Assembly: GCA_001643675.2 (NCBI GenBank)
Contig: LSRY02000013.1
Coordinates: forward strand, 1,178,001-1,242,000
Direction of reading: 5' to 3'
Origin: Monocercomonoides exilis PA203
Lineage: Eukaryota; Protista; Preaxostyla
DNA: 64,000 nt
Under the pieces are notes generated by a model. The model did not search any database. It saw nothing but the letters and a program-made list of their open reading frames with translations, and was not told where the DNA came from. The position numbers were made by a program, and so were the translations under genes. Shown piece by piece: positions 1,568 through 49,362 of this stretch; the stretch's first letter is position 1, and each line of letters opens with the position of its first letter.

Positions 1568-2834
1568 ATGAAAATATCAACAGAAATAAAATTAAAAGAA
1601 GGTAAGAAAAAACTGCAGCGCGCAATGTCTTCGCGTAAGTACAGGAAGAATCACAGTCGGCTGGAGTGAATGGCTCACAACGTTGTCGATGGAGTTGTTC
1701 ACATGACGGATGCAATTAATTCCAAGGAATTCAGCCGCACAGGTGTCAAAAATGCTGTGAGAGCTCTCAGAAAAGGAAGGCTGGCGGGAAAAGTTGGCAG
1801 ACCAGCAACAGTTGTTGGAGAAAAGGAACAAAGAGTTCTAGACATTATTCACATTGAAGCAAAGTCTGGAACACGTTAAACTCTAAAAAAAAAACAAGAG
1901 AATTGGTTTGTTTAATATTTATAAATATGTTTTTCCCATTTGTTTTTCAGATTGAAAATGTGAAAAACGACAACGATGATGAAGACGCACCATTTACTGA
2001 AGTTTCAATGTCTGCGGCATATAGTCTCGAAAAGCGTCATCCGGAGCTGTGGATGGGGACACCATTGAATTTGGACGTTTATCGCTTCTCTGTTTCATGC
2101 AGATGTGTAAAAAAAACACTGGAATAAAACACCGGACGAGCTGCATGAAACATATCATTATTATCCAGCTTTGGTTGTGAATGTTGATGAGTCTTCAACG
2201 CACGTTCCTGCAGATTCAAAACAGCTTGTGGTACATACAGCAGATACGAAAGCAGGTTTAACGAAAGAACGACCAAGAATGATAAATTTTTCATTCGTAG
2301 CAGCTGTTGCAGCAGATGGATATGCCTTTCCTTCTGTCATTTTGTGTCCAAGTGCAAAGCTGCCAGAAGAGCTGAAAAGCCTGATATCTCCAACGCTTGA
2401 GATATGGGCAAATGGAAGTAGCTGGATGGACAACGAGTACTTCAAAAGGGATGCTCTCACCGTTCTTCCACCTTCCATCATCGAAAGAAGATAGCGCATG
2501 TTACTTGAAAATGAGCACATTTTTCTCCTTGATTCACATGCATCTCGCGCAGATACATCGATCTGGAGAGAATTCCAAAAACAACAAGTCGACGTTTTAA
2601 CCTTTGTGCCACACAGTACACACCTCTGTCAACTTCTGAACAGAGGAGTGTTTGCTGTGTTCAAATCTGAACTGACAAACAGATTTGAGGTTCCATCTTT
2701 CTCTTCGTCAACTTTTCAACGAACTGCAATTGCAGACGTTCTGCCTCAATTCATCCGCACGGCATTATCGCCTTCTGTAATTCAGAAAGCTTTCGTATTC
2801 TGTGACGTTCAACACAATTCTTCTGGTCCAGTTC
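1568..2834 (+). pseudogene. pogo-like transposase, 5' part (pseudogene; 45-nt intron 1906-1950)
   Basis: ORF fragments 1670-1879, 1903-2127, 2171-2494 and 2498-2839 match consecutive parts of the 554-aa ORF at 37770. Confidence 0.9.
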
Positions 2835-4271
2835 GGTGAAATATTATCTAGGTGACAGTCGAATAGCGTGAAATTAATTATTAATATCGTCATATTTGTT
2901 GCTTCTAATATTTATAAAATTGTGATTATTGAACGACTCTTCTTTTTTATCGATCTTTCTTTTTTATGAACAACAAAATTTTATAATGGGTTGGATCAGC
3001 ATGATGAATTAGCTGTTTCCATATCTTTTAGTGGAAAACGAAAAACTCATTTATAGCTCGTATGCACGTGTTAATTTTTGATTTTTATTCATAATCTGTT
3101 TGTTATTTATGGAAAAACATTTTGAACAAAGGAAACAGAAGTCAAGATCATTGTTTACTTTGTTTTGTTGGAGATCAGCATAAATGAAAATCAAAAAGAA
3201 ACAGAACGTATGAAAGTTTTGCTTATATTTGTTTTTTTCTGATATTCATATTAAATTTATTTGTTATTAACATTTTTTTGCACAATAATAATATTAACAA
3301 TCAGAATAGCTGATGCGGCATTGAAATGAATCAGAAAACCGAAGAAATGAAAGGATTTGTGGAAGAAATAATGAAAGAAAAATTTTGTTCGATTTGCCCA
3401 AGAGAATTATTCATGAAAAGACACTTAATGATAGAAGAAAAGAAATATTCAATGAGAAATGCAGTTACATCGCTAACACGAAAAGAATATTGTTGTATGA
3501 TGAATATTGAATGTTATTAATGCTTTAACGATTCATTTTTGAAAAAAATATTTGGAGATCATTTTCAACGAAGATGTGAAGAAAATAAGAGGAGAAGAGC
3601 AAAAAGCTTCTAATTGATCTTTGCGAATGCTATATAACGCTTGGCTATGATTTCCTTTTGTGCTAACTATCATTTCGTGTGCTCTGCTTTTGAAAGTTGC
3701 ATTGAAGAAATAGGACGACAAGGCAACGCAAAAAGGAGTGGAAGTGGCATTGCTTGCTTTGAGTAGATCTGGATATTGCGTATGATAACTTCTATTTTTA
3801 TTCTTTTTGAAGTATTTTTTTTCTTATTTTTTGATTAGAAAATTGAAAAAGAAATTAACTTGAATGACATCAAAGAGATTATTCAATATCATCAGGAAAA
3901 TTGAATTTTGACAAGGCCTGCCTATCAATCGGTTTGTCAGTTTTTTATTAGGAGATTAAACAATGATTGCTGCTAGAAGGGAATGATTGAGAATGAGCTG
4001 CACTTTGTGCGAGAGGCAGTAGGAGAGCTGGAAGAGCTGGCGAAGTGTGTGGACTGGAAGAGAAAAGAAGAGGAAATGAGCGAAGAAGAAAAGAAGTAGA
4101 GGATAAGGAAGAGAAGGAGAAAATAAGGAGAAGAGGAAGATGATGAAACAGTGAGAGTAGCAGCTTATTTAAAGATAAATAATAGTTTTCTTCTATTGTC
4201 ATTGTTGTTGGAGTTGAGACAGACAGAGAGAGAAAGAAAGAAAGAGTAAGAGTAAGAAAAAGAGAGTGAAA

Positions 4272-4307
<36 letters not shown>

Positions 4308-4777
4308 AAGACACGAAAGAAACAGGAAAAGATGCAGCAGAGAAGATAGGAGAGGCAGCGATAGAGGCACAGGAGAAGGGTTAATCGAAGGAGTTTTTAG
4401 TGGAGGAGAGGGAAGAGACTTCATTGGGTCGATCATTCAATGAAGAGGATGAAGAAGAGGATGAAGAAGAGGAAGAGGTTGAAGAAGGAAAAGAGTTGAA
4501 CAAAATTTGAGATAGATTTACAGAACATTTTACTTGCAATATTTTGAAGTCTTTTTTATTTTTTGTTTACATCTTTCTTTTTCTGTCAATCTTTCTGTCT
4601 TTTCTTTCAGAAAGAAATGGAAGGAAGAAGAAAAAATAGAAATTGTTTTTGATGAATATGTAATTATCATGTGTTGAATTCATTTTTTATTTTTAACATT
4701 TTCTAATACTTCAGTTCATCAAAAGTTTGTTTTATCATTTGTTTTATTTTTTATTAAGTTCACGAAATGTTATTTAT
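2835..4777 (+). repeat. Left arm of giant inverted repeat (1943 bp)
   Basis: Reverse complement of 5823-7764. Mirror ORFs 3326+/7079- and 3948-/6164+ are identical; 3533-/6879+ differ only at a 1-bp indel. Confidence 0.97.
3300..4180 (+). pseudogene. Decayed 'LAYQSAW'-family gene carried in the left arm
   Basis: NQKTEEMKGFVEEI...MIEEKKYSMRNAV, 'gtggaagtggcattgcttgctttg' (VEVALLAL), intron-like stretch ~3780-3838, 'gcctatcaatcggtttgt' (AYQSVC), 'aatgagctgcactttgtg' (NELHFV). Multiple stops. Confidence 0.85.
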
Positions 4778-4882
4778 GGGTGTTAATGTTAGATTCTTTT
4801 TATCTGCTTGAGTTATTTTTGTTTTGAATTTTCTTTATATCACATTTATCAAATTTTGAAATTTGAATTTCTTTTTGAACAT

Positions 4883-5770
4883 ATGCAACCAAAAGTTAAC
4901 AGCAGATCGTATTTCAAAAAACTTTTCAAAATATTTTATTCCGAGAAAGAAACAATTCGATGGTTAATCGATGCCAAAATTTTGGAATCAGAACGGTTTT
5001 GTTGGAAATGCAAAAAAAACATGAAGATTTACATTTCCAATAATTTTACCAGTAGATTTCGGTGCAAACATCAACAAATAAATATGTGGAATAATACTAA
5101 TTTTGAAAGGTTTCGAATCAGAGTCAGTAACCAATGTTTAATAGCTTTGTGTTTTTGGGTTGGAATGTCTTCGTCACATTGTTCCATGATTTCTGGAAAA
5201 TCAGAACTCACAATTTCACGAATGTTTTCTTCATTTAGAAGATGTATTTCACAATATATGACAAGAAATCATTACATGCTTGGAGGTGAGGGAAAAGAAG
5301 TGGAAGTTGATGAAGCAGTTTTCCCGAAAAGAAAATACAACAGAGGGAGAATCAAACGACAAAATTGGATATTAGGAGGCATTGAGAGGCCAAAGCAGAA
5401 AGGTTTATAGTCAAGATTATTTCTTCTTCCAGTTTTGAAAAGAACAAGAGAAGTTTTGCATTCATCTATCAAAGAACATATTCAAAAGAATACAACAATT
5501 TTCACTGATTGCTGGAAAGGATACAACGGATTGGATAAAATTGGTTTCAGTCATTTAACTGTGAATCACAGCAAGCATTTTAGAGATCCCGAAACGAAAG
5601 CCCACACTCAAAGAATTGAAAGCACATGGAGTCTTTTAAGGAAATCTCTCCCACCAAATGGAGTTAGACAGAAATAATTAAATGATTATTTAAACACATT
5701 TACATTTAAAAGAAGTCCTTGTAATTCATTTAATAAATTATTGCACATGTACACATACACAAAATTCTAA
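4883..5770 (+). pseudogene. Merlin/IS1595 (ISXO2-like) DDE transposase, ~295 codons with two in-frame stops
   Basis: N-terminal CWKC...FRCKH Zn-ribbon, LGGEGKEVEVDE, RKYNRGR, WILGGIER, IFTDCWKGY, HLTVNHS, HTQRIESTW and LNDYLNTF, all in one frame. TAG at 5408-5410 and TAA at 5675-5677. Confidence 0.92.
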
Positions 5771-5822
5771 ATAAAAATCATTCATTATTATTATTATGAA
5801 ATCTATATTTTTCCGTTAATAT

Positions 5823-6292
5823 ATAAATAACATTTCGTGAACTTAATAAAAAATAAAACAAATGATAAAACAAACTTTTGATGAACTGAAGTATTAGAAA
5901 ATGTTAAAAATAAAAAATGAATTCAACACATGATAATTACATATTCATCAAAAACAATTTCTATTTTTTCTTCTTCCTTCCATTTCTTTCTGAAAGAAAA
6001 GACAGAAAGATTGACAGAAAAAGAAAGATGTAAACAAAAAATAAAAAAGACTTCAAAATATTGCAAGTAAAATGTTCTGTAAATCTATCTCAAATTTTGT
6101 TCAACTCTTTTCCTTCTTCAACCTCTTCCTCTTCTTCATCCTCTTCTTCATCCTCTTCATTGAATGATCGACCCAATGAAGTCTCTTCCCTCTCCTCCAC
6201 TAAAAACTCCTTCGATTAACCCTTCTCCTGTGCCTCTATCGCTGCCTCTCCTATCTTCTCTGCTGCATCTTTTCCTGTTTCTTTCGTGTCTT

Positions 6293-6328
<36 letters not shown>

Positions 6329-7764
6329 TTTCACTCTCTTTTTCTTACTCTTACTCTTTCTTTCTTTCTCTCTCTGTCTGTCTCAACTCCAACAACAATG
6401 ACAATAGAAGAAAACTATTATTTATCTTTAAATAAGCTGCTACTCTCACTGTTTCATCATCTTCCTCTTCTCCTTATTTTCTCCTTCTCTTCCTTATCCT
6501 CTACTTCTTTTCTTCTTCGCTCATTTCCTCTTCTTTTCTCTTCCAGTCCACACACTTCGCCAGCTCTTCCAGCTCTCCTACTGCCTCTCGCACAAAGTGC
6601 AGCTCATTCTCAATCATTCCCTTCTAGCAGCAATCATTGTTTAATCTCCTAATAAAAAACTGACAAACCGATTGATAGGCAGGCCTTGTCAAAATTCAAT
6701 TTTCCTGATGATATTGAATAATCTCTTTGATGTCATTCAAGTTAATTTCTTTTTCAATTTTCTAATCAAAAAATAAGAAAAAAAATACTTCAAAAAGAAT
6801 AAAAATAGAAGTTATCATACGCAATATCCAGATCTACTCAAAGCAAGCAATGCCACTTCCACTCCTTTTTGCGTTGCCTTGTCGTCCTATTTCTTCAATG
6901 CAACTTTCAAAAGCAGAGCACACGAAATGATAGTTAGCACAAAAGGAAATCATAGCCAAGCGTTATATAGCATTCGCAAAGATCAATTAGAAGCTTTTTG
7001 CTCTTCTCCTCTTATTTTCTTCACATCTTCGTTGAAAATGATCTCCAAATATTTTTTCAAAAATGAATCGTTAAAGCATTAATAACATTCAATATTCATC
7101 ATACAACAATATTCTTTTCGTGTTAGCGATGTAACTGCATTTCTCATTGAATATTTCTTTTCTTCTATCATTAAGTGTCTTTTCATGAATAATTCTCTTG
7201 GGCAAATCGAACAAAATTTTTCTTTCATTATTTCTTCTACAAATCCTTTCATTTCTTCGGTTTTCTGATTCATTTCAATGCCGCATCAGCTATTCTGATT
7301 GTTAATATTATTATTGTGCAAAAAAATGTTAATAACAAATAAATTTAATATGAATATCAGAAAAAAACAAATATAAGCAAAACTTTCATACGTTCTGTTT
7401 CTTTTTGATTTTCATTTATGCTGATCTCCAACAAAACAAAGTAAACAATGATCTTGACTTCTGTTTCCTTTGTTCAAAATGTTTTTCCATAAATAACAAA
7501 CAGATTATGAATAAAAATCAAAAATTAACACGTGCATACGAGCTATAAATGAGTTTTTCGTTTTCCACTAAAAGATATGGAAACAGCTAATTCATCATGC
7601 TGATCCAACCCATTATAAAATTTTGTTGTTCATAAAAAAGAAAGATCGATAAAAAAGAAGAGTCGTTCAATAATCACAATTTTATAAATATTAGAAGCAA
7701 CAAATATGACGATATTAATAATTAATTTCACGCTATTCGACTGTCACCTAGATAATATTTCGCC
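5823..7764 (-). repeat. Right arm of giant inverted repeat (1942 bp)
   Basis: Reverse complement of 2835-4777. Confidence 0.97.
6420..7299 (-). pseudogene. Mirror copy of the decayed 'LAYQSAW'-family gene in the right arm
   Basis: Reverse complement of 3300-4180. Confidence 0.85.
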
Positions 7765-8098
7765 GCCAGTTCTTTTGAAACTGCCCGAATCTTCGATTTA
7801 CCCTCTTCCCTCCCGAAGAAATAGATTCAACTTTTATGGAAAAGTGATAACTGACGAAAATCTTTTGGAGAAATGGGAAAATCATTTGAAAATGAATGTT
7901 CAAAAGAAGGATAAAATGGATGAAAAGGAGAAAGATGAAGTGAAGACTGTGGTGGATGAAAAGAAAAAAATAAAAAGAAGATTTCTTCATGTGAAAAACG
8001 ATGATTCTGACGATGAAAAGAAAGATCATGCGTCAAATCGAGCTGAAGGAAAACGGAAAGTTATCAGAAGAATTAATTCTGATTTTGTTTTTTCTTAA
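7765..8098 (+). pseudogene. pogo-like transposase, 3' remainder
   Basis: PVLLKLPESSIYPLPSRRNRFNFYGK...RRINSDFVFS matches the C-terminus of ORF 37770-39434. Confidence 0.92.
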
Positions 8099-37596: not shown

Positions 37597-39515
37597 CGCA
37601 TATATATGAATTCAATTGATTTTAATGAATACATGTTGAAACAAACCCAATTTCGCATGGGGGGGAGATGGGGGGGGGGGGGGGGTTAAGCCCCTTCATT
37701 GAACTTCTGTGTGGAATTGGAGGGTTGCATGGGGCATAAAACCTTAAGCTTGTTAAAAAATGTTATTTTTTGATTTTTTTTCATTTCATTTCAATTAAAA
37801 AAATAAAAAATTATTATGATCTTAAAAATATTATTAAAAAAATGAAAATATCAACAGAAATAAAATTAAAAGAAGGAAAGAAAAAATTACAGAGAGCAAT
37901 GTCTTCGCGCAAGGATAGAAAATACAACAGTCGGCTGGAGCGAATGGCTCACATCGTTGTTGATGGAGTTGTTCGTATAACTGATGCCATTAATTCCAAG
38001 GAATTCAGCCGTCCAGGTATCAAAAATGAAGTTAGAGCGATGAGAAAAGGAAGCCTGGTTGGAAAAGTTGGCAGACCTGCAGCAGTCGTTGGCGAAAAGG
38101 AACAAAGAGTTTTGGATATTATTCACATTGAAGCAAAGTCTGGAACATGTTTAACTTTAAGAAAAACAAGAGAATTGGTTTGCTTTATTTTTATTTATAT
38201 GTTTTTATTATTTGTTTTTCAGATAGAAAATGTTATAAACGACAACGATGATGAAGACGCACCATTTACTGAAGTTTCAATGTCTGCTACGTACAGCTTT
38301 GTCAAGCGTCATCCTGAGCTGATGACTGGAACGCTGAAGAATTTGGACATCAATAGACTGGCTGTTTCGTACAGAAGTGTTTCAAAACCCTGGTGCAAAA
38401 CACTCAACGCGTTGCATGAAAAGTTCCATTATAATCCAGCTTTGATGATAAATGTCGATGAATCTTCAACGCGCGTTCCTACAGATTCAAAACAGCTTGT
38501 TGTGCATTCATCAGACACAAAAGCAGGTTTTTCGAGTGAGACACCGAGAATGATAAATTCCACATTCGTGGCAGCTGTTACAGCAGATGGATATGCCTTT
38601 CCTTCTGTCATTTTGTGTCCAAGTGCAAAGCTGCCAGAAGAGCTGAAAAGCCTCAAATCTCCAACGCTTGAAATATGGGCAAATGGAAGCGGCTGGATGG
38701 ATAACGAGTGCTTAAAAATGTCTGCTCTCACCAATCATCTTTTTTTGATTGTCAAAAGAAGAAAGCACATGTTATTTGAAAATGAACGTATTCTTCTCCT
38801 TCTTGATTCTCATGCATCTCGCGCAGATCCATCTATCTGGCGAGAATTCCAAAAACAACAAGTCGACGTTTTAACCTTCGTGCCACACAGCACACATCTC
38901 TGTCAACCACTGGACAGAGGAGTGTTTGCAGTGTTCAAATTTGAATTAACAAACAGATTTGAAGCTCCACATTCCTCTTCATCTTCCTCCAAACGAGCGG
39001 AAATTTCTTTCGTTCTGCCTCAAGCCATCCACACTGCATCACCTCCTTCTGTAATTCAGAAAGCTTTCGTCTGCAGTGGTGTTCTTCACAATTCTTCTGG
39101 GAAAGTTCTTTTGAAACTGCCAGAATCATCAATTTTCCCTCTTCCATCCCGAAGAAATAGATTCAACTTTTATGGAAAAGTGATAACCGACGAAAATCTT
39201 TTAGAGAAATGGGAAAATCATTTGAAAATGAATATTGAAAGGAAAAATGAAATGGATGAAAATGAGAAAGTTGAAGAGAAGACTGTTGTGGATGAAAAGA
39301 AAAAAATAAAAAGAAAAAGTCTCCATGTGAAAAACGATGAATCTGACGATGAAAAGAAAGATCATGCATTAAATCGAGGTGAAGGAAAAAGAAAAGTTAT
39401 CAGAAGAATTAATTCTGATTTTGTTTTGTATTAATTTTGTTGTTTTTTTTGAATTTCTTTCACATCAATTTTTGTGTCAGAAAAAAGAAAAAGGATCAAA
39501 ATGAAATTTTAACCC
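37597..39515 (+). mobile_element. pogo/Fot1-like DNA transposon, copy 2 (open reading frame)
   Basis: Homologous end to end with copy 1. Boundaries taken from the extent of copy-to-copy homology; no clear long TIR. Confidence 0.85.
37842..39434 (+). CDS. pogo-like DDE_1 transposase (DD35D), catalytic triad intact; 45-nt intron 38178-38222
   Basis: INVDES, AVTADG, NGSGWMD and LLLDSH-x-PHSTHLCQPLD. N-terminal GRPA/HTH-like region. Confidence 0.9.
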   Translation: MKISTEIKLKEGKKKLQRAMSSRKDRKYNSRLERMAHIVVDGVVRITDAINSKEFSRPGIKNEVRAMRKGSLVGKVGRPAAVVGEKEQRVLDIIHIEAKSGTCLTLRKTRELVCFIFIYMFLLFVFQIENVINDNDDEDAPFTEVSMSATYSFVKRHPELMTGTLKNLDINRLAVSYRSVSKPWCKTLNALHEKFHYNPALMINVDESSTRVPTDSKQLVVHSSDTKAGFSSETPRMINSTFVAAVTADGYAFPSVILCPSAKLPEELKSLKSPTLEIWANGSGWMDNECLKMSALTNHLFLIVKRRKHMLFENERILLLLDSHASRADPSIWREFQKQQVDVLTFVPHSTHLCQPLDRGVFAVFKFELTNRFEAPHSSSSSSKRAEISFVLPQAIHTASPPSVIQKAFVCSGVLHNSSGKVLLKLPESSIFPLPSRRNRFNFYGKVITDENLLEKWENHLKMNIERKNEMDENEKVEEKTVVDEKKKIKRKSLHVKNDESDDEKKDHALNRGEGKRKVIRRINSDFVLY

Positions 39516-39671: not shown

Positions 39672-41078
39672 TCATGCATTCACAAAATAATCTGAAATGT
39701 AAAACGATAAATCTGGACCAAATTCACCTTTAAGAAAATCAAATATTTCATGAAAACTTGCGACAGCATCTTCGTATCCTTCTTCTTCCATCTTTTCAAG
39801 CACTTTCCTTTTTGTTGCTTTTCGTTCCTCTTCCTCCATTTCATCATCCCCTTCTTTGTTCAATCTTTTGGTAATATTCACAAAGAAATTCAAACAAATC
39901 TCTATATATTCATCTTCCAAAGTTGTCTGATTCATTTCCTCGAAAAATAGATCTATGACATTCCCCTTCACAAAAGCATTAATTTTCGTGTTTCTCGTTT
40001 CTGCGGCACTTCCAAATAAATGAATGCAATTCTTGCTAATCATTCTGTTGCAATCCCTTGATGCTTGAAACACTCGAACGATGCTTTCTATTAGCTCAAC
40101 AATTTCCTCGCTCTTCAATTTACAGGAGTTAAAGAAATTCTCCAAAATATGTATCCATCCCATCAAAATAAACTCTTTTTTCTCTTCTTTTCCTCCATTT
40201 TCTTTATCTTTTCTCGTCCAATCAACACATTTTGATAATTCTTCCAGTTCTCTTGCTGCCTCTCTCACAAAATGCAGCTCATTCACAATCACTTCTTCCA
40301 AACAATTGTCAACCCAAAGTCGGTTAACTAAAAGCCTCCAAGCAGACTGATAGGCGAGCTGCGTCAGATTGTGATGTTCTTGATGATATTTGATGATTTC
40401 TGTAATCTTATTCAAATGCAGTTCTTTGTCATTTTTCTAACAAAAGATAAGAAACAAACAATAACATCAAAAAGGAAATTGAAAAGCACATACAATTAAT
40501 CCTGTATTATTCAGAGCCAGCAATGCCAATTCCACTTCTTTTTGTGTTTCTTCATCTTCCTGTTTGTTCAATGCAATTTTAAGAAGGCAAGACATGCAAA
40601 TAGGTATCAGTTCTGAATTTAATATGTTGACAAACAAAAGATAGCATTCACAAAGGTCAGTCAGAAGATTATCAATCTTTTCTTCTTTTTTCTCGTTTTC
40701 TTCAATTATCATCTTCTCAATTCTTTCGCGCAGCGAAGAACAATAAAAGCCATAACACCACAAGTTCAAAATAACCTTACAAAATCCAACATGCTTTAAC
40801 AATCTTATGACATTTTCCATTGATATTTTCTTTTCTTCAATCATTTTGTCCATTTTGTTGAACAATTCTTTTGTAAAAGTCCAATGAATTTCAATTCCAT
40901 CCATTTCATCGATTATTCCATTCATTTCTGCGATTTTCTGCTTTTGATCTTCCTCTCTGCAATGCTCCGGTTCAGAAAGCAAATCTGAAAAAATAAAGAA
41001 AAAATTACGTCATCAAAAATTCAAATGCAACAGCAATTGAAGACCTGTGAACTTTTTTGTGTTGTCCGTCTCCTGCAT
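39672..41078 (-). CDS. 'LAYQSAW'-family protein, 3 exons (left copy of inverted pair)
   Basis: MQETDNTKKFT|DLLSEPEHC...EVELALLAL...|...LTQLAYQSAW...ISDYFVNA. Confidence 0.8.
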
Positions 41079-41479
41079 TTTTAAAAATCCATTGCATTCA
41101 AAAAACAATACCATTTTTATCATTAACATTGAATTCGCATATGAACAGATGGAAGAAATTGGAGAACAGGTTAAACAAGAAAAGAATCATAAAAAATATC
41201 CGCTTTCACGCCATCGGATTATGCATTTCCATTGGCAAGTATTGTAATAAAAAGTGATGTTTTGTCTTTTTTCTTTATAAGTTATGGATGAAATGATCAA
41301 ATCATTTTCTTTGAACAAAAATATCAACATTCAAAATGAGTGATCAGTGAGTTAATTTGTCAAGCAAAATGGGATATATTCTTTCCCATGTTTGCATGAA
41401 TCACTGAAAAAACAATTTTGGAAATCGACAAGACGTTATTAAAAATTGGATAATCAAGGATAATACAACAATAACATGA
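39685..41479 (-). repeat. Left arm (1795 bp) of second large inverted duplication
   Basis: Reverse complement of 47554-49349; mirror ORFs identical except at the last residues. Confidence 0.95.
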
Positions 41480-43299
41480 TTTGATGAAAATATCTTCATG
41501 TGTGTATTTTTTCATTGTTATGTTGACTGTTTCGATATTTCTATCGGAAATCTGTTTGAACCCCATGACTCAAATATTTTCAATAAATTATCAATCTTTT
41601 CTTTTCAGAGAAATAAGTTGAGAATGGGGATGTTCTGAATTCCAATTTTGGAAAACAGATTTCATGAACATGGGCTGTGAAACAACTCAATTTTCTTTTG
41701 AGCATGAGATAAAAACAAATTCAACTGACAATTTATTTGTTGAATATGAAAAGAGGAAAGAATTCAATGAAAAAGAAAGCAGGAACAAAAAAGACTGAAT
41801 TTTGGAACACAAAGGAGAAGAACAGTTTGTAACGTTTTTGGACAAGGAAAGTGACGGGAAATGTGGAAAGCAGAATATTAACAGCGAAAAAAGACCAAGA
41901 AATGAATGCAAAGCAATGTGTTGGAGTTTCGTTCAAGTATTGTTACGCCAGCCATCTTCTGCTTTGGCAGTCAATAAGATGTGCCTGTGGTTTTTGAAAT
42001 ATGTTTTCAGCGAAGCACAGTCGTTTTTTCATCATGCTGTTGGGACAGGGGAAATGAAGACCAACAGATTCTGCTCCAGCTCATTCCTTTGAAAGGACAA
42101 TAAAACTTGAGAGGATTGCTTCAATCACCATCCATCTGGTGCCTTTATGGGATTTGATAAATGAGCAGACAGAAGTCTTGGAACTTCAGCAACAGACACA
42201 AAGTTGAAGACAGAACTCGAAGAAATCAGAGGCTGAGCAGAAATTGTCTGCGCAGAATCAGAGGAGGGAGCGTGCACATACAAAGCAGCAGTGCCAGATA
42301 AACGCAGAAGGAGGTTGTTTCCAGACTCTATCTTGATGCCTTGAAGCAGAAAATATAACATTCGCAGGAACACAAACTACACTGCCAACGACTCCCACTC
42401 GTCCATAAACACACAATACCAAACACGAAACACCAGAATCATCCCTTTCCCATGGCACACTTGTACGATCGCATTCATCGCATCCCACAGAAAGATCGAC
42501 GGAACACTTTCCTGATGCACAACGTCCTCAATCGCAACAAACTCATCCACCATCTCACTCTGCCTGTCTTTATTAAAATGCTACAACGCTCAATCCGATG
42601 TCAAACACCCACTCCAACCCCCCTTCTCTTCTCTTCTCTTCACTCTCTCTGAATTTGACTCTCCCTAGTAAACGTGATGATCATCGTCCCGTCCAGCTGT
42701 ATCATCCCTTCCACAACCGGCTTCCCCACAATCCTCTCCTGCTCAGCACACAGCTCCACTACCACATCCAACACCTTCTTCATCACAAGATAGTTACTAT
42801 AGCTCCCATGCACACACTCATCAATCAAAATCAAAAACCTCAAATACAGCGATTCCATATCAAGAATTTGCTCTTCCTTCTTTCTCCAAATCAATAGATC
42901 CGCCCTTTCCCCCTTGTTCCTCATTCATCCCTAATTCATTCTTCGATATTTACTCCTGTTCCTCATCTTTTCTCACATTTTCTTCTCTTCCATCTGAAGT
43001 TATGTCAAAAGATCCATATGCTGCTGCTTCTTCTGCTGCTCTTCTGTTCTCCTGTTGGATGCCATCAGATGGAGAAAAACTGCACACTTCTGGTTCAACT
43101 GAATGCTGCTTGTCTGCACCCGCCTCAGCATCAGCCTTCACAAACCTCAGCCGACTCAGCCCAAGTGCCTCCACAACCAGCAGTGTCATCGCTTCTTCCA
43201 GCTTCCCCTGTTTCTCTTTGATTCTTTTAGCATTTTCTCTGTGAGCTGTCGGATAGCCGCCTTTCTCCTCGTTCTCATCTCCTTCCTCTGCCTCTTCTC

Positions 43300-44000
43300 A
43301 CTCTTCCAGCTCCTCCAGCACATTCGCTGCTTGTGACAGAACCACATCCTCCATCCTCAGCCCCGCAGCATCCAACCCTTTCTCCACAATCTCCCACACT
43401 TCATTCACGCACTGCAACCCCTCGCCCCATCGCTTCCTCGTCCATCTTTACCACCACACGCCTCGACTGTTGCGATAGCCATATCTGCATTAAAGAGTTA
43501 AATAGATCATAGACCAACGGGAACGCATTCACATCTTCCTCCGCAAAGATCCGCTTGCCCTTCAACTTCGTTCTCCACCAACTCTGCAAGAGTATGAAGT
43601 GTCACCACTCTCAAAACCAAAAGCATCTCCAAAAGCACCACGTGGTACACACACAACACCCCCATACAGCACTTCCCGCCGCGCCTCAGCATAACCTAGC
43701 GGAGCTTGTGGAACCCTCAGCTTCGATTTCTTTTGAATTGTATTCACTTCATCTGATTTTTCAACAACAATTCCAAGCTGCCTTTTGATGTTGTACATCT
43801 CATCTGCTGATATATATGATGCTACCACGTCAGAGGCATCCGAAGAGGAAATTGAAGGTGCGGATGAAGATTATGAATTCTCTGAAGATTTCTTCTCTTC
43901 GCTTCTTTGCATCAGCAATAGTGAAGAAGACAATGAATACCTAAGGCGCTGAGTACAGAGAAGAATTCTGCGCTTCGATGGTAAAGTGAAGCTTTCTCGT
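43300..44000. repeat. Decayed dispersed repeat related to 53990-54720
   Basis: Shared colinear words 'ttctccacaa', 'ccacacgcctcgac' / 'acacacgcctcgac', 'gatgaaga' and 'cagagaagaatt'. Confidence 0.55.
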
Positions 44001-45424
44001 GAATCCAACAATTTTTGCTTGAAGCTCCTCAAGTTACACAATCACAATTTCCTCATTTCCTTGCAAAGGTCAATCAGTCACAAACGCTCTCATTTTTTAA
44101 GTGGTGGGAAAAGAAAGAATTGGGTTTCTTAAGGTGAGGAGTTGAAATGAGAAGATGAAGAAGAAGCAATGCTGATAATGAATGAATTATCGTTCAGAAC
44201 CAAAATCAGAAGTATTAGATGAGAGGCATATGAAAAGATCAACTCAGAAATGGGGAATAATGCAGTTGCTGTTATCTGTTCAATCTGTTGGATTAAGGCA
44301 AAAATCCCACAGAAGCCATGAGGCATTAGAAAGATTCTATAAAATGTGTTCCACTTCGATCTCAAAATCTGAATTCTGTCAAGCTCTTGTTCATGATGAA
44401 AAACATCTTCTCTGGTTTGGGGCGTGTTTTCTTGCCTGCCTTCATTCCCCTTTCGAAAAATACTGTATTTTCAATTTCTGAACAAAATATCCTTCCTCAA
44501 GAAAGTTTCTTCGTTTCCATTTCATTTTTCTCTTTATCTCTGATGCTGATGCAATTGATGAAGAATTCACAACAGATGAAGTGGATGACGATAAAGAAGG
44601 AGAAGCTGAGTGACGTGACGTTGAATAATTTGAAGCAGAAGAAGAAGATGATGATGAAAGAATCGAAAGGCGTGATTGAAGGTTGAAAATTGAGAAGATG
44701 AGATCCAATAAATATCAACAGAGAAATTCGGTGAAATTCTCTTCTTCAGGCTTTTATCTTTTTCTGGAAAACATAATTCCTCGAATTCATAACAATCTCA
44801 GCATGACCGTTTCTCTCTCTCCAACAAAAAATAGGAAAGATTGAAAAATTCATTTTTCATTCCATCTCTTCCATTTTCGCTTCCCTTATTTCCAAAAAAA
44901 ATCATCTTTCTTCAAAAACTTTTCATCATAAAAGCATAATGCCAGGCATCTTCGAAATACCTCGCATTTCATCAATCTTCATTTCATTTTTCCTTCCTCG
45001 CCTTTCTTTTTCTTCTTCAAAGCCATCTGATTCCTCATTCTATCAACAGCCCGAATGAAAAAAAATTAATCACTTCAAAAATAATAATAATAATAATTAT
45101 ATCAAACCTTCAGAAACTTGTAAAAGCTGTTATCCACGATTTAATTCCATTGATAAAGATTTTCTTTTGAAATATCATTATTCCTTCTCTTTTCAAGTGT
45201 TTCCTCATCTGATTCGCAAAATGTCATTTCCAGAAGTCTTTTCACATTCAATTTCTCCGACTTCTGAACGATCTGATATAAGATAAATCCATGTTTTCTT
45301 TTCAATACTGTCGATTTTGTCAATATTAATCTTATTGACATCATTCCATTTTTTTTTTGTTGTTGTTGTTGTGCACTTTCCCCAGATATCAACTTCTCGA
45401 ATCCGATATTCAACACAGAAAATG

Positions 45425-47335
45425 ACATAGGGTCATATTTTTATTAGTACCCATTTTTTGTTAGTACCAAAATTTTTCGAAATGAAAAATTCTAAAAAAA
45501 ATTCAAAAAAATTCAAAACTCGAATCTGATTTGCGAATGACTTTTCTTTTTCTCTATTCTCTCTCAGTTTTATCAGTCTATTCTTTCTCAATATTGCTTT
45601 CATCTGCAGTATTTTGAATTTTCTTTTCAGCTTTTTTGTGAGATTCATTGCAACATCATTTTCTTCATCAGAAATATTTTCTTTTTCTTTTTCCATTTCG
45701 CTTTTCTTTCTCAAATAATCATCCAACTCATTTTAAAGCTTTTCTTCTGTTATTTCTTTACCGAAGAAGTCAAATCGATTTTTGTGAGAAGGAAGAGGAT
45801 AAATCGATGCTTGAGGAAGCTTCATCAGAACTGGCCCAGAAGAGTCTTTCAACATGCCGCTTCATTTGCAAGCTCTTTTGATAACTGAAGGTGATAACAC
45901 CGAATGAATTGGTTGTTGGAGAGCTTTCGCAAGAGCTGTTCTCTTCGCTGTTGAAGATGAAGATGAAGGTGCTTCGAACTGATAACTCAGCTCTGATTTG
46001 AAAACTGCAAATAATCCTTGTTTAAGTGGCTTGCAGATGAGTGTGCTGTTAGGGATTATTGTGACAACATTCACATTTTCTTTTTTGAACTCTCGCCAGA
46101 TTGTTGGATCTGCACGAGAAATGCAGGAGTCGATAAGAAGCAAGCAGTGTGATTCGTCGAGTGACATGCGTTGCCTTCTTTCTTTGATTGAAGGGAGAAG
46201 AATTGTGAGTGCATATTTTCTAAACGTTGAAGATTCCATTTATCAGCATTTGTTCGGCCATATCTCAAGATTTGAAGATAGAAGAGGCTTCAAGTCATCA
46301 GGAAGTTTGAGACTCGTCCACAGAATCACTGAAGGAAGTTATTGTCCATCAGCTGCCATTTCCGCAATCAGTGTTGAATTCACCATTCGCGCAGCAAATA
46401 TAGCGACACCGGGTTTTGCATTTGCCGGATGAACAACATTCCGATTGGAGCTATCGGGAACCCTGAGTGAAGACTCGTCCACGTTGAAAAATCAGATCGT
46501 TGTTGAAACTGTTGTACTGATGTGATCCGTTGAGCATATCATACCAGGGCTTTAGAACTTGTTGGCATGATACTGCAAGCCTGTCAACATCAACAATTTT
46601 CGGCTTTGAAGTCTTCAGCTCTGGATGTCGTTTGATGAAATCGTAGGCAACTGATACAAAATCTGAAACAATTGGAGTGTTTTCTGGCTTCAAATCATAA
46701 ATAACATTTTCGATCTTATTCTTAATTATTAATGCATTTCAAAGAATATTTATTCAAACCAGTTCACGCATTTTCTTGATGGTTAAGCTTGCTACAAACA
46801 GTGATTCTATTTTTATTTCGTCCAGCACTGTTTGCTATTTTTCGCCAATGACCGCAGCAGGTATTCCAATTTTGGATACAAATCAGCCTTGCTGAACAGC
46901 CTTCACAGCACGCCTTATTCGAATTTTGCTGAATTTTTTGCTGTTGTATGCATCCACCATTCGCACAGCTCCATTGTTAACAATATGCGCCATTCGCTCC
47001 AGCGAATTCCAAAATAACAGATATTTGAATAACAGCATCTCCTCCCGCAGCTTCATTTGACCAGCAGTTGATTTCCTTTCAACTTCCTTTTTCATTTTTT
47101 TTATGTGTTATGATCATAAAGCCCATTTGTTTAATTTATTATTATAAATTTCAATTTTCATTGAAATTTAATTTTTTGAACATTAAATGCATATTTTTTT
47201 GTATTTAATTCATTGGAACCAACCTGTAACTGATAGAATTTCAACGGGAGGCTTTTAACCCCCCACCCCTCCTCATTAGAAACAGGTTATGCATTTAAAT
47301 GTATTTATTCAGTTGCTAATTCTTTTTCTTATATA
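45425..47335 (-). mobile_element. Diverged, degenerate pogo-like transposon, copy 3
   Basis: LERMAHIV, FIKRHPEL, LAVSCQQVLKPW, LLLIDS and IPNSTLICKPL; 45-nt intron 46715-46759; G-rich 5' motif at ~47257-47273. Confidence 0.88.
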
Positions 47336-47553
47336 CAAAAAATACTATTTATAAATCGAAATGTGTGTGGCAGAATAATTGATTTTTAAAAAAATAAAAT
47401 CGAATAAAAAAAATAGGATCTGATGAAAATATGACTCTATTTTCTTTTCTTCAAATAACTCACATTTCTGATCTCTGAAAAGGAAACAGATTGAAGCACC
47501 TTCAAAGTGAATAGAACAAAGGAAAATACACGAATTCATATTTTTTCATTCAT

Positions 47554-49349
47554 TCATGTTATTGTTGTATTATCCTTGATTATCCAATTTTTAATAACGT
47601 CTTGTCGATTTCCAAAATTGTTTTTTCAGTGATTCATGCAAACATGGGAAAGAATATATCCCATTTTGCTTGACAAATTAACTCACTGATCACTCATTTT
47701 GAATGTTGATATTTTTGTTCAAAGAAAATGATTTGATCATTTCATCCATAACTTATAAAGAAAAAAGACAAAACATCACTTTTTATTACAATACTTGCCA
47801 ATGGAAATGCATAATCCGATGGCGTGAAAGCGGATATTTTTTATGATTCTTTTCTTGTTTAACCTGTTCTCCAATTTCTTCCATCTGTTCATATGCGAAT
47901 TCAATGTTAATGATAAAAATGGTATTGTTTTTTGAATGCAATGGATTTTTAAAAATGCAGGAGACGGACAACACAAAAAAGTTCACAGGTCTTCAATTGC
48001 TGTTGCATTTGAATTTTTGATGACGTAATTTTTTCTTTATTTTTTCAGATTTGCTTTCTGAACCGGAGCATTGCAGAGAGGAAGATCAAAAGCAGAAAAT
48101 CGCAGAAATGAATGGAATAATCGATGAAATGGATGGAATTGAAATTCATTGGACTTTTACAAAAGAATTGTTCAACAAAATGGACAAAATGATTGAAGAA
48201 AAGAAAATATCAATGGAAAATGTCATAAGATTGTTAAAGCATGTTGGATTTTGTAAGGTTATTTTGAACTTGTGGTGTTATGGCTTTTATTGTTCTTCGC
48301 TGCGCGAAAGAATTGAGAAGATGATAATTGAAGAAAACGAGAAAAAAGAAGAAAAGATTGATAATCTTCTGACTGACCTTTGTGAATGCTATCTTTTGTT
48401 TGTCAACATATTAAATTCAGAACTGATACCTATTTGCATGTCTTGCCTTCTTAAAATTGCATTGAACAAACAGGAAGATGAAGAAACACAAAAAGAAGTG
48501 GAATTGGCATTGCTGGCTCTGAATAATACAGGATTAATTGTATGTGCTTTTCAATTTCCTTTTTGATGTTATTGTTTGTTTCTTATCTTTTTGTTAGAAA
48601 AATGACAAAGAACTGCATTTGAATAAGATTACAGAAATCATCAAATATCATCAAGAACATCACAATCTGACGCAGCTCGCCTATCAGTCTGCTTGGAGGC
48701 TTTTAGTTAACCGACTTTGGGTTGACAATTGTTTGGAAGAAGTGATTGTGAATGAGCTGCATTTTGTGAGAGAGGCAGCAAGAGAACTGGAAGAATTATC
48801 AAAATGTGTTGATTGGACGAGAAAAGATAAAGAAAATGGAGGAAAAGAAGAGAAAAAAGAGTTTATTTTGATGGGATGGATACATATTTTGGAGAATTTC
48901 TTTAACTCCTGTAAATTGAAGAGCGAGGAAATTGTTGAGCTAATAGAAAGCATCGTTCGAGTGTTTCAAGCATCAAGGGATTGCAACAGAATGATTAGCA
49001 AGAATTGCATTCATTTATTTGGAAGTGCCGCAGAAACGAGAAACACGAAAATTAATGCTTTTGTGAAGGGGAATGTCATAGATCTATTTTTCGAGGAAAT
49101 GAATCAGACAACTTTGGAAGATGAATATATAGAGATTTGTTTGAATTTCTTTGTGAATATTACCAAAAGATTGAACAAAGAAGGGGATGATGAAATGGAG
49201 GAAGAGGAACGAAAAGCAACAAAAAGGAAAGTGCTTGAAAAGATGGAAGAAGAAGGATACGAAGATGCTGTCGCAAGTTTTCATGAAATATTTGATTTTC
49301 TTAAAGGTGAATTTGGTCCAGATTTATCGTTTCACATTTCAGATTATTT
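47554..49349 (+). repeat. Right arm (1796 bp) of second large inverted duplication
   Basis: Reverse complement of 39685-41479. Confidence 0.95.
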
Positions 49350-49362
49350 AGCATTCGTTTAA
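47955..49362 (+). CDS. 'LAYQSAW'-family protein, 3 exons (introns 47989-48048, 48540-48597); C-terminal residues replaced at the duplication breakpoint
   Basis: Same as 39672-41078 except ...SFHISDYLAFV vs ...SFYISDYFVNA. Confidence 0.8.

Follow-up and report, generated by a model that had tools for sequence, protein, structure and literature searches.

Transposons of the Merlin superfamily have been described with terminal inverted repeats (TIRs) of 24-462 bp, and those of the Monocercomonoides families F1-F7 mostly measure 23-29 bp (Lopes et al. 2021, PMC8101967). We analysed a 64,000-nucleotide stretch of the Monocercomonoides exilis PA203 genome (contig LSRY02000013.1, positions 1,178,001 to 1,242,000; hereafter the window, with positions counted from its first letter), which carries at 2835-7764 a Merlin element whose arms of 1,943 and 1,942 nt are about four times as long as the longest published Merlin TIR and contain a broken fragment of a host gene. 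The assembly searched is nanopore-based (82.3 Mb, 101 contigs; PMC8767320), and copies of the element are labelled by its contigs, the window copy being C7. With the Merlin superfamily, including F1-F7, the window element has in common the DDE transposase with an IS1595 domain, the GG ends, the 8-bp target duplication and the organism; its arms fall outside the range of 24-462 bp, a range that is descriptive and non-diagnostic. Target duplications of the superfamily measure 8 or 9 bp. The ends shown for F1-F7 start otherwise, and neither their terminal sequence nor their TIRs of 23-29 bp are matched by the window lineage. The lineage ends GGCGAAAT and GGCGAGAT were not found in the Monocercomonoides supplement files of PMC8101967, and the unbounded group G1 of that study contains part of the end of the C9-type sister elements. 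That survey used an old 454 assembly, which may be a reason why the lineage was missed.

Three other systems resemble the window element in part. Like the Pack-MULEs and the animal Pack-TIRs (PMC3310237, PMC8277862), it is a TIR transposon with a broken, intron-containing, transcribed host fragment (transcription being frequent in Pack-type elements), acquired sequence can enter the extended TIRs of MULEs (PMC3310237), and the gap-filling and template-switch models for the origin of Pack-type elements apply to it as well. Pack-type elements, however, belong to another superfamily (Merlin is not mentioned in PMC8277862), whereas the window element retains a transposase gene, carries its cargo in both arms and belongs to a lineage with in-register replacement by paralogues. 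An intron-bearing host fragment lies inside an element that later transposed, as in Pack-type elements, but a parental gene of high identity does not accompany it, the best host paralogue reaching 71% for the window cargo and 74-85% for the cargos of sister elements; it behaves as a Pack element does, although we do not classify it as a Pack-MULE. With the foldback elements FB, Galileo and Tetris the lineage shares very long, variable arms and arm homogenisation, and tandem repeats inside the arms of sister elements, which recall those of classic foldbacks, are a possible further likeness; Tetris arms reach up to 1,735 bp, and the described foldbacks are mostly Mutator elements, Galileo belonging to the P superfamily (PMC4079207). 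In the cycling of maize MuDR TIRs (PMC10401008), as in the window lineage, recombination uncouples the evolution of the TIRs from that of the transposase, and matching arms are restored, but the switching between heteromorphs and homomorphs involves exchange between element clades and TIRs of 150-250 nt, whereas the window lineage uses host paralogues and has arms of kilobase size. Neither a Merlin foldback nor gene capture by a Merlin was found in the literature searched, in which few subscription journals were covered. The arms of described foldbacks are built of element-derived repeats and not of a host gene. In our best explanation, to which we assign a probability of about 0.75, the window element is a now non-autonomous copy of a foldback-structured Merlin lineage whose arms homogenise, swap in host paralogues and carry a decaying cargo.

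Architecture, target and transposase of the element

The element and its insertion target comprise the following features:

2498..2826, + strand: left part of the insertion target, a relic of a pogo-like DDE_1 transposase that starts further left, at about 1650
2827..2834, + strand: left copy of the target-site duplication, TCCAGTTC, from flank comparison and empty-site reconstruction
2835..4777, + strand: left terminal inverted repeat, 1,943 nt
2835..2857, + strand: terminal motif GGYGARATA...TGACA, common to the lineage
4100..4777, + strand: inner arm with GA-rich and (GT)n simple repeats and AT-rich DNA
4778..5822, + strand: unique core, 1,045 nt
4883..5770, + strand: Merlin/IS1595 transposase, 295 codons, with in-frame stops at 5408-5410 and 5675-5677
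5823..7764, - strand: right terminal inverted repeat, 1,942 nt, with the mirror cargo at about 6505-7430
7765..7772, + strand: right copy of the target-site duplication, GCCAGTTC
7773..8098, + strand: right part of the insertion target, where the same DDE_1 relic resumes

The element ends in GG...CC, and its two arms differ by two substitutions (2837 and 3361) and one indel of 1 nt (at about 3542). When the element and one copy of the duplication are taken out, the two pogo-like halves align ungapped, at 87%, to an intact paralogue in the window (37770-39434), an uninterrupted DDE_1 open reading frame (ORF) of 554 codons. The element was thus inserted as one unit of 4.93 kb into a pogo relic, with an 8-bp duplication of which the copies TCCAGTTC and GCCAGTTC match at 7 of 8 bases. 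Alternative borders, with a perfect 6-bp duplication and C...G ends, fit the window locus only, and they were rejected because the elements on C25, C28 and C9 have GG...CC ends and exact 8-bp duplications. The terminal motif at 2835..2857 is likely to be the end recognised by the transposase.

The core matches the profile PF12762 (DDE_Tnp_IS1595) in its last piece with 49.3 bits (cut-off 27 bits), and an alignment that includes two homologues from outside and an intact sister ORF shows the D-D-E motifs VDE, TDCW and RIES. Domain, motifs, ends and duplication all identify the window element as a Merlin. The C25 copy has sense codons at the two stop positions of the window transposase, but a separate break of its own; judged by their sequences, neither copy is autonomous, both transposases being broken. 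Intact transposase ORFs of 290-305 codons occur in C28/C31, C32, C35a and C9, and the transposases of the sister subfamilies are about 70% alike. Beyond the M. exilis genome only two relatives of the transposase were found, both distant (35-38%) and located on contigs of 1-2 kb that are too short to gauge arm length.

A lineage with long, homogenised arms

A second full copy of the element is present at C25:244026-249099 (5,074 bp, arms of about 2.0 kb), where the left flank ends in GGATTATT and the 8-bp duplication is perfect; a pattern combining the right end with the predicted GGATTATT duplication had one exact match in the genome, at C25:249076-249107. Because the C25 copy has its own, different duplication, the element moved as a unit. 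Exact 8-bp duplications also flank the C28 and C9 elements. A genome-wide scan with the terminal consensus returned 62 ends (26 pairs and 10 single ends), against none with the reversed consensus as a control, and the lineage comprises about 30-36 elements, with arm lengths, where read, of 0.48-2.0 kb. The arms measure 483 nt in C28/C31, 860-970 nt in the C9 type, 923 nt in C5 and 1.2-1.7 kb in C8, C17, C35a, C23, C36 and C32, i.e., very long arms of variable length enclose a middle domain, as in foldback elements. Five shorter derivatives (C15, C91, C30, C67 and C6) are inverted pairs that have the outer arm in common at 76-82%. A 30-bp minisatellite is expanded in the inner arms of C23, C32 (many units) and C17, whereas the window copy has simple repeats only. 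For the outer right ends of several sister elements, for the short derivatives and for the C19 element described below, coordinates alone were used.

The initial annotation of the window had proposed a foldback-type, cargo-carrying Merlin with an ISXO2-type transposase, arms at 2835-4777 and 5823-7764, a core of 1,045 bp (4778-5822) and GG...CC ends. All of this agrees with our results (long arms, host-derived and intron-bearing sequence in both of them, and the match to DDE_Tnp_IS1595), to which the two in-frame stops are added. It had also inferred mobility as a unit, and the different duplications of the C7 and C25 copies and the restored empty site support it; other loci with the same termini, different 8-bp duplications and long, differing cargo arms, which it suggested looking for, do exist. 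Its 8-bp flanking duplication is present, although as an imperfect match.

Substitutions between the two arms of one element are rare (2/1,942 in the window copy, 0/1,430 in C25; 0-0.1%), whereas the window and C25 copies differ from each other at 42/446 positions of the inner arm (9.4%), 53/993 of the core (5.3%) and 1.4% of the outer arm. Had the arms of one element drifted freely since insertion, they could not have remained so similar, and one arm is therefore being copied onto the other; on these alignments, the two arms of an element have been kept identical since they inserted. The window arm reaches 27-28 nt further inward than that of C25, and the sequence gained is one-sided in C25. 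In the C19 element (C32-type, C19:1094866-1105678), a gap opens at nt 229-236 of either arm (3,775 nt in one and 3,767 nt in the other); from their coordinates, the two gaps are probably one insertion mirrored into both arms. In a Merlin on C26 (L039:3584-10000), which has no target duplication, the palindrome continues for at least 790 nt past the element ends, and this suggests a general tendency of the M. exilis genome to extend inverted repeats. The transposase of the C26 Merlin is interrupted by an inserted pogo-like DDE element.

Several further observations concern the lineage and other Merlins of the genome. Two elements of 2,410 bp on C31 (L024) and C28 (L025) are 99.6% identical, with intact ORFs and 483-bp arms, and are the best candidates for recent activity; a target duplication was seen at C28 only, not at C31. 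Three elements of about 1,993 bp with the same terminal 23-mer (C18:1007351-1009343, C21:1311619-1313610 and C91:1240370-1242363) probably represent a recent non-autonomous family. Lineage ends are also paired 34 kb apart (C9:346160-379882) and 25 kb apart (C35:244071-269122), for which nested insertions, rearrangements or very large composite elements are candidate readings. Inverted pairs of Merlin transposase matches with identical scores (C16:1002503/1012414, C19:624302/625146, C80:178071/180449 and C25:1119886/1149312) suggest frequent inverted duplication around Merlins.

The cargo and its host family

The left arm contains the following cargo features, mirrored in the right arm:

3170..4096, + strand: cargo, the broken 5' part (about 60%) of a gene of an ARM-like M. 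exilis family, with pieces at 3332-3517, 3714-3782 and 3860-4057
3208..3304, + strand: GT-AG intron, 97 nt, spliced in an RNA contig
3780..3838, + strand: GT-AG intron, 59 nt, the family's intron between its two main exons, spliced in RNA
3932..3976, + strand: cryptic GT-AG intron, 45 nt, within former coding sequence, from an RNA contig joint

The cargo makes up about 0.8-0.9 kb of each 1.94-kb arm and spans approximately residues 30-260 of about 440, with stops (3518-3520 and later) and frameshifts. C25 has in common with it the frame breaks of the first exon and two in-frame stops of the main exon, the one at 3518-3520 and the next, and the cargo was therefore already broken before the two copies split. 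At least 8 elements have cargo in both arms, and each of the 8 cargos read is cut off at about 60% of the protein and is broken at least in part. RNA contigs from two runs of an independent study join the arm across the three GT-AG introns, cover at least 3170-4212, and, being spliced, show real RNA in the sense of the cargo. The acceptor of the third intron is present in the window copy and absent from the left arm of C25, whereas other letters of the contigs are C25 alleles, and both loci are therefore probably transcribed. One RNA contig bridges the junction between left arm and core; none lies over the body of the transposase (4961-5748), an absence that is weak evidence. A scan for sigma-70 promoters gave nothing usable, the bacterial model being inapplicable to a eukaryote.

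The host family, named here LAYQSAW and represented in the window at 48051-49362, counts about 1,950 candidate loci in the genome, with full-length proteins of about 430-450 aa, and the top 150 of these candidates mostly keep an intact main exon. Five members that were looked up are all hypothetical proteins of M. exilis; the members checked are about 45-55% identical to each other and have a near-invariant HQE..NLT.LAYQSAW block. A Pfam search gave no name for the family, and no published description of it was found; spliced models were searched one exon at a time. The predicted fold (pLDDT 92) is an all-helical solenoid with its best matches among armadillo-repeat (ARM) proteins (TM about 0.4), a predicted structural likeness by which we call the family ARM-like. 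The arms hold roughly 1-2% of the family matches, all truncated where read. In the seven free-standing family genes compared with the arms, we found neither element ends nor terminal or upstream arm sequence, and the idea that such genes lie inside Merlin ends was rejected for these seven. The window contains a second inverted duplication (39685-49349; arms of about 1.8 kb, 99%) of a full-length family gene, whose copies point outward from a 6-kb core that holds a pogo-like relic and which has no Merlin ends; the last codons of the right copy are replaced at the breakpoint.

The main exon of the cargo starts at arm nt 1026-1028 in six elements with four cargo types (window, C25, C32, C35a, C23 and C17), and the four types are 62-67% alike, which is comparable to unrelated paralogues. 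Across sister elements, the cargo is as divergent as unrelated paralogues are but lies at the same distance from the end. Identity between the C17 and C23 elements is 95-96% for nt 1-490 and 89.5% for the core, yet 67% for the cargo, with sharp edges at about nt 490 and 1265, and the differences fall preferentially on third codon positions (46/36/26 for positions 3/1/2). The two arms of C17 are identical save for an in-frame patch of about 290 nt with 68% identity (L032:6653-6940 versus L032:9425-9720), which we read as a half-done conversion. In-place hypermutation or nanopore error is disfavoured as the source of the patch (substitutions account for 90 of its 95 differences, the reading frame is preserved and third positions are mildly favoured).

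Proposed mechanism, alternatives and meaning

In the mechanism that we propose, the 5' end of a family gene would have been picked up by an ancestral element, close to one of its termini, through a template switch while a gap or break was being repaired, and the capture would have been mirrored by intramolecular repair between the arms, i.e., breakage of a hairpin or cruciform followed by copying from the opposite arm. The same arm-arm repair would keep lengthening and homogenising the arms. Because about 2,000 paralogues offer homology, a host paralogue might sometimes be used for repair, so that the cargo is replaced in register and then copied to the other arm, and since the transposase would need only the terminal tens of bases, the cargo would travel as a decaying passenger.

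Several points weigh against this explanation. The outer arms of the window and C25 copies differ by 1.4% but their cores by 5.3%, which requires either that the two elements exchanged sequence at a later time or that rates were uneven; nanopore polishing could in principle flatten differences between arms. No near-identical host donor for the swapped cargos or for either version of the C17 patch was found in the assembly (best 74-85%), and the donors must therefore be old, lost or themselves converted. Between subfamilies, nt 166-490 are 51-57% alike, against 46-52% in controls, and a single ancestral capture would be indicated by the register only. The cargo tree is small (14 rows) and has little support; in it, the grouping of all arm cargo into a single clade is weakly rejected (p-AU 0.037).

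We consider it unlikely that the cargo is selected, with a host promoter and 5' gene end driving transcription inward, either of the transposase or of a self-limiting double-stranded RNA, and the register being kept and refreshed for that reason. In its favour, subfamilies with transposases no more than about 70% alike retain the register, the cargo is transcribed and spliced, an RNA contig crosses the arm/core junction, and just 105 nt of unique core separate the arm from the transposase ATG. However, this cargo is missing from the long arms of the C28/C31 and C9 subfamilies, whose transposase ORFs are intact, the transposase body lacks an RNA contig (weak evidence, as said), and homologous replacement preserves the register without selection. 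No statement on RNAi machinery was found in PMC6759080. A bolder reading holds the cargo to be a selected, exchangeable module and the arms a transcribed, break-prone conversion hub that samples and moves the family of about 2,000 members in register and may feed sequence back to host genes or make hairpin RNA against them, a two-way device of diversification or regulation for a host family; we regard it as a long shot.

That each subfamily independently captured a different paralogue, with no replacement in register, might explain why the cargos are as far from each other as from host genes, why one cargo clade is weakly rejected and why the upstream arm DNA is barely alignable between subfamilies. 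Independent captures, however, would not bring the main exon of four types of cargo to within 3 nt of one position, and C17 and C23, in which nt 1-490 agree at 95% and the homologous block alone differs, also speak against this reading, so that we find it very improbable. The initial annotation had suggested that every jump adds two cargo copies, making the element a possible engine of gene-family expansion. Jumps do duplicate two cargo fragments, as C7 and C25 show, and at least 8 elements have cargo in both arms; but the addition of gene copies is not supported, because what it took for an intron-bearing 'LAYQSAW' member, rightly as to introns and family, is a 5'-truncated and multiply broken fragment and not a gene. 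With 8 of 8 cargos truncated at about 60% and broken or partly broken, about 30-36 elements against about 1,950 candidates (of which the top 150 mostly have an intact main exon), and seven free-standing genes without element ends or shared upstream DNA, we hardly credit that the large family was built in this way. An assembly or fold-back read artefact, which the nanopore-based assembly and the lack of any single read or contig spanning the whole element (the contigs from two DNA runs are all short unitigs, covering 30/30 bins in one run and 29/30 in the other, with loose ends at 7764 in agreement with the flanks of C25) might suggest, has a negligible probability in view of the distinct flanks that rejoin into one gene, the target duplication, the three arm differences, the second locus with its own perfect 8-bp duplication, the 26 paired ends genome-wide and the RNA contig of an independent study that bridges the left arm/core junction.

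The preferred explanation, a foldback-structured Merlin lineage with homogenising arms and host paralogues swapped in, extends the combined body plan of foldback and gene capture to the Merlin superfamily, in which we found neither described. The lineage also gives unusually clear views of the growth and upkeep of giant TIRs, namely an inward creep of 27-28 nt, identical arms despite 5% divergence of the core, an arm caught midway through conversion and an insertion that appears to be mirrored in both arms. Because the arms are homogenised after insertion, such insertions cannot be dated from the identity of their arms. For M. exilis itself, the element lineage does not explain the large host family, as its arms make no new working genes; the evidence points to a flow of sequence from the host family into the element.

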